Source: Oikopleura dioica
Lineage: Eukaryota > Animalia > Chordata
Direction of reading: 5' to 3'
DNA length: 64,000 bases
Assembly: GCA_907165135.1 (NCBI GenBank)
Contig: OU015569.1
Coordinates: 7,564,001 to 7,628,000 of the forward strand
Positions 4,001-40,110 of the stretch are shown piece after piece. Every line of letters begins with the position of its first letter. The first letter of the stretch is position 1. Both the position numbers and the translations under genes were made by a program. Under the pieces are notes generated by a model. The model saw nothing but the letters and a program-made list of their open reading frames with translations. It was not told where the DNA came from and searched no databases.

Positions 4001-7000
4001 GGAGCATTTGCGTTTACCCGGGATTTTTTTGGCGGATCATCCGCTGATTTTCTCCGTTTCTCCGCGCTGTTCTCCGATCCTCCGATCGTCCGATTTTCTC
4101 GGCCGCGCGGATTTCCCGCGATTACCCGCTACCCTTTTTTCTAGCCAATCAAAAGAGTGGAACACCCTTTAATTTCGTCTTTTGAGCAGAAATTTCGGCG
4201 GATCATCCGCGATTCTCCGTTCCCTTTTCTCCGCTGAAAACCGGCGGATCTTACGTGAAAAAAACTGCGGATTTTCCGTGAAAAACCTACGGAAATTCCG
4301 CCGAAAAAATCGCGGGTAAACTCAAACGCTCCGAATTCAGCAGCCCTGGCTAGGAGTAAAAACAACTCTAACAAAAATGCTTTCAAATTCATTTATTCGT
4401 TGTATTTCTTCCTTTGTAAGCTTAATCGGAGGTTCTTTTTGAAAGTCGTAAAATAATTGATAGTAAATTGTTTCGTGTTTGAGTTTGTCGTGACGTGTTC
4501 GATTGTAAAAGCCCTTGGAAGTGGAAAATGCCGCTGTTTGAGCGGATTCACCGGAAACAAATGCGAAGATACTTGCGCTATCGGGACATATGGCAGATCG
4601 TGTGCCCAAAAATGCAAATGCGCTGAAGGCGTGCCCTGTCATCCTCGCTCTGGTCGCTGCGTACGTAAATGTCCACCGGGCCGCCAAGGACTCAGATGCC
4701 AGAAAACATGCAATCCTGGTTATTTCGGACATAACTGCCGACAAAAGTGCTCATGTTCGAAGAAAAATGCCTCTGGGTGCGACGCCCGCACTGGTAAATG
4801 CATATGTAAGGCGGGCTTCCTTGGCAACGATTGCAGCAGCTCTTGCCCAGCTGGTTTTTACGGAATGAATTGCAAAAGCAAGTGCACTTGCTTAAATGGC
4901 ACGTGTGACAGCGAAGACGGTTCGTGCATTTGTTCCGCTGGCTTTATTGGACCGAATTGTGGACAGGTAATTGTGGCACTTCGAAATAACATTATCGAAA
5001 AGTCAAAAAATATAGAGCACTTCATTTTTGTTTAGCCCTGCGCTGACGATAGGTGGGGAATCAGTTGTGTGGCGCTCTGTCAGTGTGGCAATGGGAAGTG
5101 TAATCCGATTGACGGGACGTGCACCTGTCCTCCTGGATTTAGCGGCAAGAATTGCGAGCGAACATGTCAAATGGGCACTTATGGACAAGGGTGCACCAAA
5201 ACCTGCCACTGTCAGGGATCGGAGCCATGTGATCCAGTGACCGGTGCTTGTGTTTGCGATGCTGGTAGAACCGGCGCAAGGTGCGATCGTCAATGCCCAG
5301 AAGGTTCTTATGGGGTTGGTTGTGCCCAAAAGTGCTCGTGTCAGAATGGCGCTAAATGTGATCCTATTTCTGGTGCGTGTTCATGTTCGCCAGGCTACCA
5401 CGGCGTAATTTGTGAACGACCTTGCCCGGATGGCTTCTGGGGATTATCTTGCCGGAATAATTGCAACTGTGGAAACAGTGGCAGTCACTGTAATCATGTC
5501 ACTGGTTTATGCACCTGTTCATCTGGTTTCTACGGCGATGACTGCCTCCAAGTTTGCCCCTCTGGTAGCTTTGGCGAGAATTGTCAGCAAATCTGTAGCT
5601 GTGGCGAAGGCGCTTCAAGCTGCGATCCATTCACCGGCGAATGCCAGTGTAAGCCTGGTTACACGGGCCTCAGATGTGACAAATGTAACTAACAGAGCGA
5701 AATATGCTGAATTAACAGGAGTTTAGTTTGTGAAAGCGGGATGTGGGGATTACGTTGTGAAAACCGATGCAATTGTCGAAATGGCGGTCAGTGTGACGCG
5801 CAGACAGGTGTTTGCCAATGCGCTGATGGATGGATGGGCTCAAAATGTGAACTGCCATGTCAAGACGTGAGTTTTTAGATTAGCCCCTTTGAACTTGGCG
5901 ACGCCGGATCTAACGGACTCAATAGGGCTATTATGGTGCCGGATGTTCGACTACTTGCGGATGTCTCAATGGGGGTAAATGTGACGGTGATGGCCAATGC
6001 AGATGTCTAGACGGATACGTCGGCGACCAGGTAAATTTTTCTATTTTGTAGAGCTTCTCATCGTTTAGTGTCAATCGCCGTGCGAAGACGGGACTTGGGG
6101 TACTGACTGCAAGCAACAATGCAAATGCGAAAATGGTGCATCAAATTCGTGTGATAATGAAACTGGCAAGTGTAACTGTCTTCCTGGATGGCGTGGTAAA
6201 AATTGCGAGCTTCCGTGTTTGCCGGGATTTTTTGGTAAAGGATGTGAGCAAAAATGCTCTTGCAAAAACAGCGAACCATGTCATCATGTAACTGGTAGAT
6301 GTTCCTGTCCTCCAGGTCTAACAGGCTATGGATGTCATCGGGCCTGCCCCAACGGACGCTTCGGCATTGCTTGTGAGCAGATGTGCGCCTGTGAGAATGA
6401 AAACTCAGAATGCTCTCCAGTTGATGGAAGATGCACTTGTTCGTCAGGATGGACGGGGAAGAATTGTGATGAAGAATGCTCCGAAGGTCTTTGGGGTCCA
6501 AATTGCTCAGAAGTTTGCCTTTGTCCTGATGGACAGTGCGATCGAATTTCAGGGCAATGTCGAACATGTGCTCCTGGACATATTGGTCCTGATTGTGAGC
6601 AGCGGTGTACATCGTATTTTTGGGGAAGTGGCTGTGCACAGGTAGGCGTTCATCTTATGAGTCGGATAAAATATATTTAACAGATATGTACTGCTATGGC
6701 AGCAGATGCTGGAGCTTGCAAACGTCCTGATGCTACGATCAAAAGATCGAATAGTGATCTTTGTGCGAGAATCGATTGCGGAGAAGGTGGTTGGTGCGAT
6801 GACGGTAAATGCTATTGCCCTGCAGGAAGAACTGGAACAAGATGTAAAGATGTTTGTCCTCAAGGAACTTGGGGTGTTGCATGCTTGCAGCAATGTAATT
6901 GCGGGCTCGGTGGTAGCTGTGACCCCACCACCGGAAGCTGCTCATGCGGAGTCGGACTTACCGGACCAACTTGCAGCCGTGAATGCCCCGACGGTAGATA

Positions 7001-7532
7001 ATATAGAAAGTTCAAAAATACATACATCTCAGGTACGTGGGGACTGTCGTGCAAAAACATTTGTCAGTGCCAATGGAAAAATACTGAGAAATGCCATGGA
7101 GCAACAGGAAGATGCTTTTGCAAAGCAGGAATGACTGGCGATCATTGCACGCAAGGTAAATATTCTAGTATTTCTAAGAGAAAAAAGAAACTTAATCACA
7201 CACAAGAGTGCGATGATGGTCGCTGGGGTCGAGGATGCCAATCTAGATGTGACTGCGGTGGATACCTATGCGACAAAGAAAATGGAAAGTGCTTCTGTCC
7301 GCCTGGGTTTATGGGACCCAAGTGCGCCACAGGTTTCGCTATCAAATAATCTGCTGCCGTTTTAATTTGTGTTTTCTAAGAATGCACTGGAGGAAGCTAC
7401 GGGCCCAATTGCTCGTTACCTTGTCAATGTGAACATAGTGCGTACTGTGCAGGTGACACTGGGCGGTGCCACTGTCGACCGGGCTGGGGCGGCCCTCGAT
7501 GTCAAGTTCGAATTAGCTACATTGCTCGCTGA
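1074..7532 (+). CDS. MEGF6: MEGF6-like multi-EGF extracellular protein (EMI C-terminal half, Ca-binding EGF repeats, long array of laminin-type EGF repeats), multi-exon; 5' end unresolved
   Basis: Exon ORFs give [23 protein letters not shown] (EMI end), repeated DINEC/DIDEC cbEGF units (1308-2830), then more than 20 CxxGxYGxxC-C-CxNGxxCxxxTGxCxCxPGxxG units to [10 protein letters not shown] (TGA 7530-7532). No TM segment seen. The architecture matches MEGF6; orthology was not tested. Confidence 0.85.
3985..4348. mobile_element. hAT-type MITE (364 bp) in a MEGF6-like intron
   Basis: Starts CAGGGCTGCCGAATTCGGAGCATTTGCGTTTACCCG and ends CGGGTAAACTCAAACGCTCCGAATTCAGCAGCCCTG (about 50-bp imperfect TIR). 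Exact 8-bp TSD GCTAGGAG at 3977-3984 and 4349-4356. CAG termini with an 8-bp TSD are typical of hAT. No coding capacity. Confidence 0.9.
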
Positions 7533-33815: not shown

Positions 33816-35431
33816 TTAATTACATTGGGTGATTTTGGCTTGCGATTTTTTGTCTGCGTCACCTTGAATCTCTCCAGGCTGGTCATGGAAGCTGATCGAT
33901 TCGAGAATGTCATCTGTATCAGACTCTGATGTCACATAAGACGGGCGTTTTCGCTTTCGCTTTGCTTTCTTGGTCTGTTTTGCTTTTTGGTTGTGGAATC
34001 GCCGCGCCAGCCCGTTGCTGAGCACACACTGCTCGAGCCGTTCTTCGTTCGATAATCCACGGAGATCTTCTGCTTCGAAGTAAGCATCAATCAATGCCTG
34101 AGGCATCTTCTTCAGCTAAAGTCAACAAGTCCGGCACTTGAGTAGACTAGATTATACCTTTCCGTTCTTGCTAGGAGGTTCTTTAGGGATACCAGCGTAG
34201 TTAACGGTGCTCCGTGCTTCAACCCATGCCTGCGTGTGCCTTTTTCCTAAAATTTATGTATATTTCAGATCCAATAATTCTTAATACTTACCTAAGAATT
34301 CAACATGGTACTTGGTTGGGTTGCCATTATCGTTCGTGTCGAAGAAATTTCCTTCAATGGGGTCGTTGCATATAATCGCCGGCCAAGCAGTGAAGCCAGT
34401 TAATTTCGCTTGCACCAGGGTTCCCTCCAGCATATTGGAGTAGACGTAAGTAAGTCCAGCCTGCTCAGCCATCTTCTCGTACTGCAGATGGTTAACCTCC
34501 GGAATGCTGCAACTGAAGAACAAAAATATCGATGACGAACTTACTCATGCTCTAATACCTATTGAATGCCTCATCAGGATTGAACTCGCAATACCAAGGC
34601 TCGTCTTCGAATGTTTCAGCTACTTCTAGCGGTACGCGTCGCCATTTGAGACACTCTTCATGTTCGCATTGAATCCATGCATCATCTTCAAGCTCTTTCT
34701 GAATGCTCATGTTCGTATAGTTTGATTAAATGCATCTTACCGCGATCGCTTTAACGTTATCACTTTCTGTCGCTTCTTCTTCATCCTCTGTTGATGATTC
34801 GTGGGTGTTAACCATCTCCAGACCGGGTGTGTAGTTGTTCGATTTGAATGAGGGCACCTTGTAATCGATTTTGTTTTCATCGCAAAATTCGCGACGTCGT
34901 TTGCACTCCTTGTCGAATAGTTGAGGCACTGAATACGCAGATCTTAGTTACGCTTCTTCAATATTCTAGGAATTCTGATTCATAACTTCTGTGCGACGCC
35001 CTAATTAAAAACCACGAACTGAAGAGATCCTTACCAATTAGAAACGAAATGTCCTGTAGAGTTTGGTCGAAGCGGATATCTGAGAGGGGATCAGAGGGAT
35101 GAAGGCAAATATCGCACACTGGACATTTTATATCGTTCTTTGTCTTCAGTCCATCGTAGACGTATTTGAGGATGCACTAACAATATGGCTAGCAGTGAAC
35201 TTAGATGGTTGCATAAATAATCTTACCGATTTACAGAATGCGTGCATGCACTCGATAACCATCGAGGCATCAATTAAGTATCCTGTGCAAAGTGGACAAG
35301 TGAAGAATTGATTCAGTTCATGCGACTTTTGTCGGGGTTACTTCTGCTCACGAATAGTAGAAATAGATAAAGAAATATCCCCAAGCCTGAAATGTGACAA
35401 CGGTATCATCTGGCTGAGCCGCCAAGGACAT
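33816..35431 (-). CDS. Fusion protein: PCGF/BMI1-type C3HC4 RING + zf-CW + PWWP (ZCWPW1/2-like reader); 3' end may extend to 32495
   Basis: Spliced by eye: ELNQFFTCPLCTGYLIDASMVIECMHAFCKS/CILKYV...CPVCDICLHPSDPLSDIRFDQTLQDISFLI/VPQLFDKECKRRREFC (BMI1-like RING and helix). A phase-0 42-nt intron leads to AWIQCEHEECLKWRRVP...EPWYCEFNPDEAFN/SCSIPE (zf-CW), then VQAKLTGFTAWPAIICNDP...YHVEFLG/RHTQAWV (PWWP). First exon uncertain. Confidence 0.85.
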
Positions 35432-35867: not shown

Positions 35868-38800
35868 TTAATAGTTGATATGGGCGTTGAAAAACGTCGC
35901 TTGCGCCAGGAGGTCAATGAGAAAAGCGCCTTTCTTACCCCAGAAGTATAGTTTAGTAGAGCTTGTATGCCATTCGAATCCATCGATGCGCATACGCTCA
36001 GGTGAAGTAAAAAGCTCAATAGGTTGCAGATCTGCTGCTTTCAGGAAAATAATAAATACAGAAAAGTTATGGGAGAAAACGAAATAACGAACACATGGCG
36101 AGAATGAATACGCCGAAATAGGGGAACTTGAATCAGGAGCAGAGAAGGTCAATATATTTTCTGGAGAAAAAGAATCTTTATCTTCAAACATCCAAAGCCG
36201 AAGACTACAGTTTGATATTGATGCAAGGTAAATGATCTAGAAATGCTTTATGAGGATAAACTACTCAAACAAAACTAACCTTTGAAGAAGGAAAGGATTT
36301 CCAGAGGATACCCTGTTTCGGGCTTTTCGAGTTAGTGCAGCAGCTTTGAAATGGAGGTAGTGTAAGATGAATAATTGGTTCATTAGTTTGATCTGACAGA
36401 CTCCAAACGTGAATATTGCCATTCTGCGAGAGGGAAGCCAATAAACCACTAGAAATGTCAAGACTTGTCCTGTCAACTTTGTCTGAGAGATTCTGAAACT
36501 CGTCGACAACCGGGCATATAGAATGAGGTTCTGTCGAACGAAGGTCGACTTTCTGAAAGAGCTCAAAAGGAAAAATAGAATCGATTCAAACTACCTTAAA
36601 AGAGAAGAGATCGCTTGCTCCATCGCCGTTTGCATTCAAGAAAACAGAGATTTGTATAATCGTGAAACTTCCAACTGAAATAATGAATTGTCTCGAGGAG
36701 CACCAGTGGATATCTTTTGCGTAGCCTTCAACATTGATCTGAGTGGATTTTATAAAGCCGTATTTGCCATTTTTTCGATCCCAAACGCAAATGCGTCCAT
36801 CCTTTCCACCAGACGCCACTAAACAACCATCTGGAGACCATCTAATTGTGAGAACTTTTTCTGTGTGAGAAGATTCTCCGTTGGTTCCTAAATGATCTTT
36901 ATATATTTTCTTTCATAGTTTATCCGTACCTTTCAAATGGAGTATATAACTTCCGTCAAAATCATAAATGCAAGTGAGGCCACTCTCGTAGCCGAACGCG
37001 ATCTGACAGTTTTCAGCGCAACGAAAGTCAAATGCTGAGACTTTTTCTTTCTCTCGAACGATCTCTTTGGTGACATTGCTGGAACTCTTCAATTTTAGCT
37101 CGAATGATGTGCTTGATGAGCCGATCACGCATATTTTATTCTCAAGGAGATTCTGAACGACTGCACTGGTTTCTTTCTCAGAGATTCGTTGAATTCCTTG
37201 AGTTGAAAATGATTTGAAGCAAAACTTCTGGACGATTTCGAGATCTTCACGGGTTCCGTAAAGCTCTGTAAGAAAGTTTCTATTCCCCTTTTCGCTAGTT
37301 GGGAAGGATATTGACAGAAACGAGTACAAAATTGGAATTATTTGCGGAAACTTGTCGAGCCAATACTTGCAGAAGGATTCTTTAATAAGCGGACTCGATG
37401 AAAACACAGTCGGCGTTTCTGCATTGGCGATTTCTTTCTCGCAAAATTCGGTAAAATGTGCTGATTTGTTGCGGATAGCTTTCACCAAGTCGATAAAGGT
37501 GCGTTGATAGGCGTCAACGATCTTTCCTTTTTTTGCGTGGCCAAGGTGTTGTCTTCGAAGATGCTTGCAAATTTGGTCGCGCCAGTCTAGCTCGTCAAAC
37601 TGATAGTCCATGCATAGGATAGCATTTTCATCTGCATTCTTGAGTAAATCGTAGCACTTCTCAATATAATCGAGCTTCTCGATCTCGTTGAAGAAAGCGG
37701 GATGCTTGGTAATGGCTTCGACGCTTATTCGCTCGGTGAGATCGTTTTTTAACATAGTCTCGAGGAGTTGCTTGAAAATGGAATCCATGACGGCTTCTAG
37801 CGACGGCTCTTCCAGTGGAATTTTGTACCATTCATTTCCGAACGGATGGCCCCCGTCAGTCAGCACGAAGTAAATAACCAGACCCAAAGAATAGATATCC
37901 GACTTTTCGTTGGCTTTCTGAAACTTTCCGCCGCTATTCGAGAGGGTTTCAGGCGCGCTTTCGAGAGGTTCTTTGTGCTCTACTTATAACAAACAATGAT
38001 TTATGAATGAAAAATGAAGAACCTGTGCCTATAAGCGAGAGTACCACAGTAGGAGGTGTGAGAAGTTGCCTTCGCGATGGTGTCATCAGATTTTGTGATT
38101 TTACTCAAAGCAAAGTCTGATAGTGCGCAAGAATAGCCATTGTTTTCCCTCTGAATGAGGATATTTTCTGGCTTCAAATCGCGATGGATAATTTTTTCTT
38201 TTTTCGAGTGCGAGGAGTGAAGATACTGGATTCCGTCTACGATTTCTTTGAGTAATTTACGTTTTTCTTCTGCGGTTGGAGTCTCGTCACGGATCAACTT
38301 TGCTAAATCCAAATCGTACTTCTTCATGAAAATATCTAAGTGCCAATGGCCGTCTATCATCTCGTATTTACTGTATAAATAGCGGCAGATATTCTTGTGT
38401 TCATAATGGCTAAAGAAAATTTTCAAATATAGAATCTTTCGGATAGGAATTATCTTCTTATTAAAAATAATAATGAGTAAATTTTAAAAGTAAATGTAAA
38501 TTACCGAAGTACATCGATTTCGCGTTGGATTTTCGTTCTTGTATGTTCATCAATTTTCTGCCGCTTGACCGCGACAACACGTCCTTCGAGCTGTCCCTCG
38601 TAGACAGTGCCAAAGCCTCCAGTGCCAAGAATTTTTGGCTGACGGTAGCCTCGCCAGGGATTCCAATTTTAGGGAGTGCAAGGACATCATGAAAGGGCTG
38701 ACGCGTCTGGAGCTGTTGTCGGAGAGCCTGGTTTTCGGCCTCGAGAGAGCGCACGCGTTCCTCAAGAGTTTCAACAATATCCGTCAGTCTTTGCACCTCG

Positions 38801-38933
38801 TTACGCGAAGAGTAACATAAATGCTCAAACTCACTCCCTAGATCCCGGTACTAAATTAAGTTAAATATATCACCAAAGTGGCGTAAATTTGTACCTGTCT
38901 GAGAAGGGAGTCATATTCTTCGCTGTGGGTCAT
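35868..38933 (-). CDS. Cytosolic coiled-coil + IRE1/RNase L-like kinase + KEN ribonuclease + WD40 repeat protein
   Basis: MTHSEEYDSLLRQ/VQRLTDIVETLEERVRSLEAENQALRQQL (coiled coil). Kinase IIHRDLKPENILI, LSDFALSK, APE, SDIYSLGLVIYFVLTDGGHPF. KEN LDWR...YQRTFIDLVKAIRNKSAHF...YWLDKFPQII. WD40 SHTEKVLTIRWSPDGCLVASGGKDGRICVWD, LLASLSQNGNIHVWS, LASISNCSLRLW; stop at 35868. No signal peptide or TM. Confidence 0.85.
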
Positions 38934-39001: not shown

Positions 39002-40110
39002 TCAACGATTTTGAACTTGAAGGAGCGATGAGTCGAAGCCTAGGCTTGACAATGGTACAGTACAGTAGTCAATTACAGTTGACGGAACAGTGGGTTCTTC
39101 GGGGGATACAGCTAGTATTCACGGTTTAGTTGTCTTAGTGCACATTTTACTTACTAATAGAGGACAGGGCTTTCATGCAAACACAAGCACTTTCATCGCC
39201 TTTGCCACAGCGCTGATCAAGATCCCAAATGACGTCGATAGGAATTCCAGCCTTGACGGCGTCCGCATGTCGAATGATGAAAATAATGACCGAAAAAGGC
39301 ATGTAGCAGGCTATTGAATCAGTTTATTCTTTGACGCGTTCGAGAACATACCTAGAAAAATTGCAGTAATCAAAGAATACCAGGACCATTTTAGAGCATG
39401 CACCGTCAGTCCGTTTGCTTTCTTGTTTGAGTTCTTATGAAGCAATTCAATGAAAGAGAGCTCGACCTTAGAAAACTTTTCCTCCAAGCGATTAAGAACA
39501 AGAGCTTTTTTCGCCAGGCTGAGCAAATAGGACGCGTAGATGTACATGCCGATATTAAAGAGACCAAGAAATGGATTTATCGCGAAACTAGAAAAGGAAA
39601 ACTATCCGAGGACTCTCATCAAAGCAAATTACAAAAATATCAAGCTACATGCGTTCCGCGGCGCTCGGACCATTCTATTCATCATGTCTTCCCTTTCTTG
39701 TTCGGTGTCTTCGAAGTACTTCTCGGATCGTTTCTCTCGGATATCATGCACCTGATCTCAATTGACGAGCGAAACGGATAGGAACTACCTTTCTGGTGGG
39801 GAGGCTTTGGAAAAAAGAGTTGCCATTTGGTCGCTTCCACCTAAGCTCCTGTTGCTGGTCGATTCGCTTGTTCCGAGAGATGCGCTTCGACTCTCCAAAG
39901 CGTCGCATTATTCGCGCAGGGACACCCTCGATTGTTTCTCTTTTCGAAGCCAAACAGTTCTCCACATTGAGTGTTCTAGAAGTTGCTTCTACTCTTCGTC
40001 GAAAACATACTCAACAGAACAGTCTGCTCGATAGCTGAAAAATTAAATCCCCTTTGGCCAATCAGAAGTCTTCTGTCGCGCCACTGTCGCGCTTGTCTTC
40101 CTGTACTCAT
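39002..40110 (-). CDS. Uncharacterised small membrane protein (2-3 hydrophobic segments), multi-exon
   Basis: Exons join through 37-70 nt introns into ...FAINPFLGLFNIGMYIYASYLLSLAKK...ALKWSWYSLITAIFL/ACYMPFSVIIFII...; probable stop TGA 39002-39004. Start codon tentative. Confidence 0.55.

Follow-up and report, generated by a model that had tools for sequence, protein, structure and literature searches.

A larvacean gene that joins a leucine zipper, an IRE1-type kinase–RNase module and a WD40 propeller

The window analyzed here is a 64,000-nucleotide (nt) stretch of the Oikopleura dioica genome (contig OU015569.1), and all coordinates given below are positions within it unless another contig is named. 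On its minus strand, between 38933 and 35868, lies a single gene that in the spliced model has seven exons and ~891 codons, assuming the A6 state of a short homopolymer in exon 2. From N to C terminus the modules of its product are a five-heptad leucine zipper, an IRE1-type kinase, a kinase-extension nuclease (KEN) RNase domain of the HEPN type, and a WD40 propeller. The six introns of the model are all short (98, 95, 71, 42, 42, and 43 nt), and no paralogue of this kinase–KEN–WD40 gene was found within the window.

The KEN domain and the first propeller blades are encoded within one exon (36930–37957, with a continuous open reading frame [ORF] at 36913–37887), and relatives carry both domains in single ORFs, one of them an intron-free ORF with all four modules. 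Hence, KEN and WD40 belong to one gene, as had been proposed in a first-pass annotation made from the sequence alone. That annotation placed the KEN/WD40 junction at 36930/36890; its donor is retained here, and the acceptor moves to 36887. Spliced contigs from a marine-plankton metatranscriptome, 95%–99+% identical to the window, map to the gene and confirm two joints (38029/37957, by which GTLAYSAPE is restored, and 36595/36552), and the 35919–36139 region of exon 7 is also covered by a transcript contig. These contigs show that it is transcribed and spliced. For the remaining joints, support comes from the relative's intron-free ORF of 925 amino acids (aa), to which the window protein aligns with few gaps or none; four of the six exon joints of the window are crossed without a gap, and two-residue indels lie at or next to 36930/36887 and 36595/36552. 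The product of exon 7 is identical in a Tara scaffold that differs from the window by 1.5% in DNA. Coding differences between the metatranscriptome contigs and the window were seen at 36641, 36708, and 38205 (F663S, H641Y, and a synonymous change at S179); at residue 641, Tyr is also the state of the intron-free relative, and the differences represent standing variation in the propeller.

The intron-free contigs of this closer relative (L006 and L007) were found in a metagenome scan. The single ORF of L006 (75–2852) begins MTKSEENDSLVRQ, the counterpart of exon 1, and its product matches Pkinase (3.8e-43), Ribonuc_2-5A (9.2e-9), and WD40 (3.8e-9); aligned over the full length, it and the window protein share 66% identity. 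By module, the identity is 74% in the kinase, 67% in KEN, and 67% in WD40, and the propeller, no less conserved than the nuclease, is therefore under constraint. A scaffold from the Tara metagenomes (L002) carries the syntenic orthologue; the RING/zf-CW/PWWP gene downstream of it also matches the window (35385–33819, at 50%–87%). The 865-aa product reconstructed for this orthologue also contains all four modules and is 30% identical to the window protein (32% in the first pairwise alignment). The reconstruction requires a 91-nt GA-AG intron (6976–7066 of the scaffold) between the exons encoding WGWNRNLQWQ and TDDTFFGSS, as judged by protein collinearity only. A further sequence, P0003 (locus L001), has KEN and WD40 in a single ORF. 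The layout has thus been kept in no fewer than five lineages that can be told apart, at roughly 30%–66% identity.

The N terminus reads as a textbook parallel dimeric leucine zipper by its register, and dimerization is predicted. The d positions are L10, L17, L24, L31, and L38, and the a positions V14, V21, V28, N35, and L42, with the Asn in the fourth a position; this Asn recurs in the corresponding heptad of the L002 orthologue, and the zipper of L006 runs to seven Leu heptads. In an AlphaFold2 (AF2) model of the relative, residues 2–61 form one helix, and Pfam matches to bZIP profiles are weak (0.003). The coiled coil noted in the first-pass annotation is therefore this heptad zipper. No signal peptide was seen on inspection of the gene product, the N terminus of which is polar, and no convincing transmembrane segment was found, there being no hydrophobic 19-mer ahead of the kinase. 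The sole 19-mer scoring above 1.6 (aa 632–650 of the first model) belongs to strands of the propeller, and its counterpart in the L002 orthologue (TFFGSSGKK..) is polar, so that the earlier description of the protein as free of both signals holds.

The C-terminal ~390 aa form a β-propeller. The WD40 repeats noted earlier are confirmed by a PF00400 match of 42 bits (E 1.1e-10; cut-off 27) on the exon at 36595–36885, and pieces of the L002 orthologue reach 72.6 and 53.2 bits with the same family. Exons 6 and 7 match the WDHD1 propeller profile at successive positions, reaching the C terminus of the profile. The AF2 model of the relative has some six four-stranded blades, and an unmodelled stretch of 78 aa holds one further WD-like motif. 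The propeller probably has about 7–8 blades.

Pfam scans of the window ORFs detect Pkinase and Ribonuc_2-5A (PF06479), the latter above its cut-off, along with weak WD40 matches (Table 1). The first-pass annotation had correctly read HRDLKPEN (residues 186–193) and the DFA that follows it. It had also reported that a Gly loop and a VAIK lysine could not be reconstructed and had raised the possibility of a pseudokinase. Both elements are present: GTGGFGTV ... VAVK is encoded at 38630–38560, and was missed because its frame is shifted by 1 nt relative to that of the zipper exon. At 38636–38632 the window has CCAAAAATT (A5), where an alignment shows CCAAAAAATT (A6) and an open frame in four wild metagenome contigs (L041–L044) that are 98%–99% identical to the window. 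In these contigs, and in protein P0192, exon 2 is one 98-aa ORF, and a search with the upstream ORF returned two proteins of 98 aa in which this stretch is uninterrupted (...GEATVSQKILGTGGFGTVYEG...). The A5 is a single-base homopolymer deletion, which looks like a long-read assembly error or a private allele. A 47-nt GT-AG intron (38685–38639) was also considered as a way of restoring the kinase frame; it was rejected, as the residues encoded there (KIG..GEATVSQK) are conserved in a relative and the wild A6 contigs read through it. With the frame restored, the Gly loop (GTGGFG, residues 71–76), K91, E106, D188, N193, and D209 are all kept, and relatives have DFG where the window has DFA. For these reasons a pseudokinase is not indicated, and the kinase looks catalytically complete.

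The nuclease motif is likewise intact. In an alignment of 42 IRE1-like sequences the columns that hold R400, N401, and H405 hardly vary, and in the three aligned family members these residues do not vary at all. Tyr388, a candidate catalytic residue, comes three positions after the column occupied by the catalytic Tyr of IRE1; every family member has it, and it precedes the Arg by 12 residues, the corresponding spacing in IRE1 being 13 (Y892 to R905). KEN/HEPN RNases are defined by an Rx4-6H motif at the end of a core helix (PMC3710099), and in the window this is R400-NKSA-H405, the AF2 helix extending to the motif. The sequence IRNKSAHF, which the first-pass annotation had singled out as an intact RNase motif, is found at 37476–37453, within the KEN domain.

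Table 1. Features of the kinase–KEN–WD40 gene in the window
Feature	Position	Strand	Description
Exon 1	38895..38933	-	Start codon and MTHSEEYDSLLRQ; zipper helix begins; in frame with exon 2 via a 98-nt GT-AG intron
Exon 2	38505..38796	-	Remainder of zipper, linker, Gly loop GTGGFG, VAVK (K91), αC Glu (E106)
A5 homopolymer	38632..38636	-	1 nt fewer than the A6 of wild contigs; shifts the frame between zipper and kinase
Exon 3	38029..38409	-	Kinase N-lobe/C-lobe core, HRDLKPEN (D188, N193), DFA (D209), activation segment to GTLAY; Pkinase 2.4e-18
Intron	37958..38028	-	71 nt, GC-AG; metatranscriptome contig joins 38029 to 37957
Exon 4, first part	37693..37957	-	Kinase C-lobe (SAPE ... HPAFF); aligns to IRE1 C-lobe; AF2 predicted local distance difference test (pLDDT) high
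Exon 4, middle	37255..37692	-	KEN (HEPN) domain; Ribonuc_2-5A 1.8e-9
RNase motif R400-N401-K-S-A-H405 (Rx4H)	37456..37473	-	Near-invariant columns among IRE1-like sequences
Candidate catalytic Tyr388	37507-37509	-	12 residues upstream of R400
Exon 4, last part	36930..37254	-	Helical linker and first one or two propeller blades; AF2: linker helix, then strands
Exon 5	36595..36887	-	Canonical WD40 repeat (WSPDGCLVASGGKDGRICVWD) and next blade; 3' end set by transcript joint 36595/36552
Exon 6	36280..36552	-	Degenerate WD blades (LASLSQNGNIHVWSL); WDHD1 propeller profile 9.1e-5; collinear with the relative's ORF
Exon 7	35868..36236	-	Last blades, stop codon 35868-35870; WDHD1 profile positions 211-289 of 291, E 6.9e-6

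By sequence and by predicted fold the gene is an IRE1 derivative and does not descend from RNase L. Over kinase and KEN together, the orthologue P0001 scores 7e-59 with human IRE1 and 3.5e-49 with yeast Ire1, and RNase L is not among its best 60 matches; for the full-length relative, RNase L is absent among matches at or below 1e-20. The KEN domain of the relatives, taken alone, gives an E-value of 1.4e-7 against IRE1 and 0.48 against RNase L, and the PDB sequence matches of the window's KEN region are to IRE1 chains only. For an AF2 model of the exon 4 product (pLDDT 77.7), the best 50 structures retrieved by Foldseek were all IRE1. Hence, of the "RNase L/IRE1-like" label given to the gene in the first pass, the IRE1 half stands and descent from RNase L does not.

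The comparison with IRE1 (ERN1) can be drawn in some detail. The kinase plus KEN module is nearest to IRE1 in both sequence and fold, with KEN following directly on a Ser/Thr kinase in which the positions of the catalytic Lys, Glu, HRD, Asn, and DFG Asp are kept. The EHxN(I/V)xRY αC–β4 motif and the R-N-x3-H RNase motif are common to both. The larvacean protein has a zipper at its N terminus in place of a signal peptide, PQQ-like lumenal domain, and transmembrane segment; Pfam finds no PQQ or β-propeller domain there, although one is present in the IRE1 matches P0008, P0012, and P0017. It also has the ~390-aa propeller after KEN and a three-residue insert before the RNase helix, and the window has DFA in place of DFG. 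With RNase L it shares a soluble, cytosolic-type arrangement of kinase fold and KEN, in which a repeat domain has been added to an IRE1-like core and dependence on dimerization is presumed. The repeat domain is, however, WD40 and C-terminal in the larvacean protein, whereas in RNase L it is ankyrin and N-terminal, and Pfam scans found no Ank family, either in the window exons or in the full-length relative. RNase L is moreover a pseudokinase, whereas the larvacean kinase is apparently complete, and the similarity between their KEN domains is not significant.

This architecture appears to be rare. An exhaustive phmmer search over 1.84 billion cluster representatives, with the exon encoding C-lobe, KEN, and blade as query, gave 195 matches, only three of which (P0001–P0003, all from marine metagenomes) extend past KEN. 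WD40 never follows KEN in the 26 IRE1-like matches that were scanned out of the 195 (chosen mainly for long C-terminal tails); these carry PQQ lumenal domains and CCCH and SF3a/zf-U1 tails. Word-based searches of 5.8 billion proteins returned only metagenomic sequences, with no NCBI or UniRef entry of this layout. In the literature searched, KEN or Ribonuc_2-5A was not found in combination with WD40. The term WD40 is absent from a PNAS 2023 survey of RNase L homologues (PMC10400998), and the KEN fusions listed by others are to kinase, ankyrin, CCCH, UBI, and BRCT, with neither WD40 nor a zipper among them (PMC3710099). The first-pass annotation knew of no described kinase–KEN–WD40 architecture, and none was found in the annotated protein sets and papers searched; among the cluster representatives, KEN-then-WD40 is confined to this small marine clade, which would seem to be one of larvacean tunicates.

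We consider it probable that the gene is a larvacean-restricted, soluble paralogue of IRE1 that has lost the lumenal sensor and membrane anchor, gained a zipper, and acquired a WD40 propeller after the RNase, and that it acts as a zipper-held dimer with its RNase domains back to back. In IRE1, association of the lumenal domains lets the cytosolic modules meet through their N-lobes, and the resulting back-to-back dimer completes the RNase. A similar exchange has reportedly been engineered, in that IRE1 with its lumenal domain swapped for a leucine zipper is said to have its kinase–RNase dimerization driven by that N-terminal zipper. The zipper is N-terminal to the kinase–RNase module in both; the larvacean protein differs in being natural and soluble and in having a C-terminal propeller. 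The contacts of the back-to-back dimer of human IRE1 have been described (PMC4536996). In the larvacean protein, a parallel zipper lying 10–35 residues ahead of the Gly loop would hold two protomers together at their N-lobes, replacing dimerization through the lumenal domain. Such dimerization would be constitutive, leaving control to expression, to the nucleotide or phosphorylation state, or to the propeller. Nucleotide binding and trans-autophosphorylation would then favor an IRE1-type back-to-back dimer and so complete the KEN active site, and the enzyme would be expected to cut RNA independently of metal, leaving 2',3'-cyclic phosphate ends. The propeller may serve as a docking surface that selects an RNA or protein target or partner, or as a brake on the constitutive dimer. 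The role of the protein could lie in RNA surveillance, in defense, or in a lineage-specific processing step.

To our knowledge, kinase–KEN RNases come in two forms, IRE1 with a sensor in the lumen of the endoplasmic reticulum (ER) and RNase L with an ankyrin sensor for 2-5A. The larvacean gene would be a third natural solution, in which dimerization is apparently built in through a zipper, and the nuclease is followed by a new repeat domain. Confined as it is to one small animal clade, it may nevertheless provide a natural test of how far the kinase/RNase switch of IRE1 can be uncoupled from the ER, and an entry point to the unexplained expansion of KEN domains in larvaceans.

A different reading, which we think unlikely, makes the protein an innate-immune sensor and effector resembling RNase L: the propeller would bind a ligand derived from a pathogen or from stress, and this would lift the autoinhibition of an RNase that is already dimeric. 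Release of this kind has analogies in the ankyrin repeats of RNase L with 2-5A and in the WD40 repeats of Apaf-1 with cytochrome c, and a zipper that predicts a constitutive dimer also predicts a need for a brake. The rate of evolution can be cited as well. The neighboring RING/zf-CW/PWWP gene (33819–35431, against 3266–4648 of L006 and 9480–11239 of L002) is ~87% identical to its counterpart in L006 and ~67% to that in L002, where the kinase–KEN–WD40 gene has 66% and ~30%. Divergence faster than that of the neighbor is compatible with a conflict-related role and is no proof of one. The comparison spans unrelated protein families. It has also been reported that KEN domains without a kinase have undergone a lineage-specific expansion in O. 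dioica, which was discussed as conflict-related (Anantharaman et al. 2013, PMC3710099). The gene comes from the same group of organisms and has the same KEN/HEPN domain, in keeping with an apparent diversification of KEN in larvaceans; however, the published proteins are solo KEN domains, whereas this one keeps its kinase and adds a zipper and a propeller. Against an immune sensor, no ligand, partner nucleotidyltransferase, or induction is known; the propeller is C-terminal to KEN, a position that neither the RNase L sensor nor the IRE1 sensor occupies, and it matches generic WD40 families only. The ligand-sensing propeller and the antiviral or stress pathway put forward in the first pass are thus at most suggested, by analogy, by evolution faster than that of the neighbor, and by the reported KEN expansion. 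We accordingly hold it doubtful that larvaceans independently built an RNase L-like cytosolic immune effector from IRE1, with a zipper-primed dimer released by a ligand of the propeller. If they did, the gene would be part of a wider, fast-evolving repertoire of KEN RNases for defense in an animal without an interferon/OAS system, and a propeller acting as sensor would mean convergent evolution of RNase L-type defense.

Several observations tell against the gene encoding a working soluble IRE1-type enzyme and have to be set beside the evidence for it. The window sequence itself is frameshifted at A5. The later blades of the window are degenerate, and the C-terminal half of the propeller was modelled with low pLDDT. 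In a MAFFT alignment, P0001 and P0003 have Tyr at the column of the canonical IRE1 catalytic Tyr (human Y892), but the window has Val. The salt-bridge residue D620 of the human IRE1 N-lobe (numbering of PMC4536996) appears unconserved by eye in a hand alignment. Finally, three bulk RNA-seq runs of O. dioica gave 0–1 reads, which is uninformative: expression may be low, or the runs may represent another lineage or another stage. Expression of the gene looks low; transcript support for splicing covers the two joints seen in metatranscriptome contigs (38029/37957 and 36595/36552), to which the bulk runs add nothing.

Two further readings take up these observations. The protein could be a catalytically silent scaffold, its kinase (DFA) and/or RNase inactive, serving only as a WD40/zipper adaptor. 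The Val in the canonical Tyr column would fit this, as would the DFA of the window, at which the transcript contig over that codon listed no difference. However, relatives have DFG, and K91, E106, D188, N193, D209, and R400/N401/H405 are kept and conserved down to ~30% identity; in addition, the RNase activity of IRE1 and of RNase L requires nucleotide binding and not phosphotransfer, so we give a silent scaffold very little credence. Equally improbable is a young pseudogene, decaying or already non-functional, to which the A5 frameshift at 38636–38632, the 0–1 reads in the bulk runs, and the weak WD40 scores of the degenerate blades in exons 6 and 7 might be ascribed, but which is at odds with the A6 and open frame seen independently in four wild contigs of its own lineage, the other ~820 codons in six exons, all open, the existence of spliced transcripts, the last-exon product unchanged in a contig with 1.5% difference in DNA, and a propeller 67% conserved with L006.

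Some minor observations concern the surroundings of the gene and its more distant kin. A transcript contig also covers 39210–39300, in the upstream neighbor region, indicating another expressed gene just 5' of this one. The L006 contig (1–5746) is intron-free over three collinear genes (kinase–KEN–WD40, RING/zf-CW/PWWP, and the start of the next) with an intergenic spacer of ~450 nt, and could be a polycistronic (operon) transcript, a read-through, or merged transcripts. A larger set of contigs (L009–L035) was considered for membership of the family and set aside, these being canonical IRE1 genes with a lumenal domain, a transmembrane segment, and a CCCH tail. They are many near-identical long marine contigs with an intronless canonical IRE1 ending in CCCH (for instance L021, 2598–5966), and are probably from a picoeukaryote.

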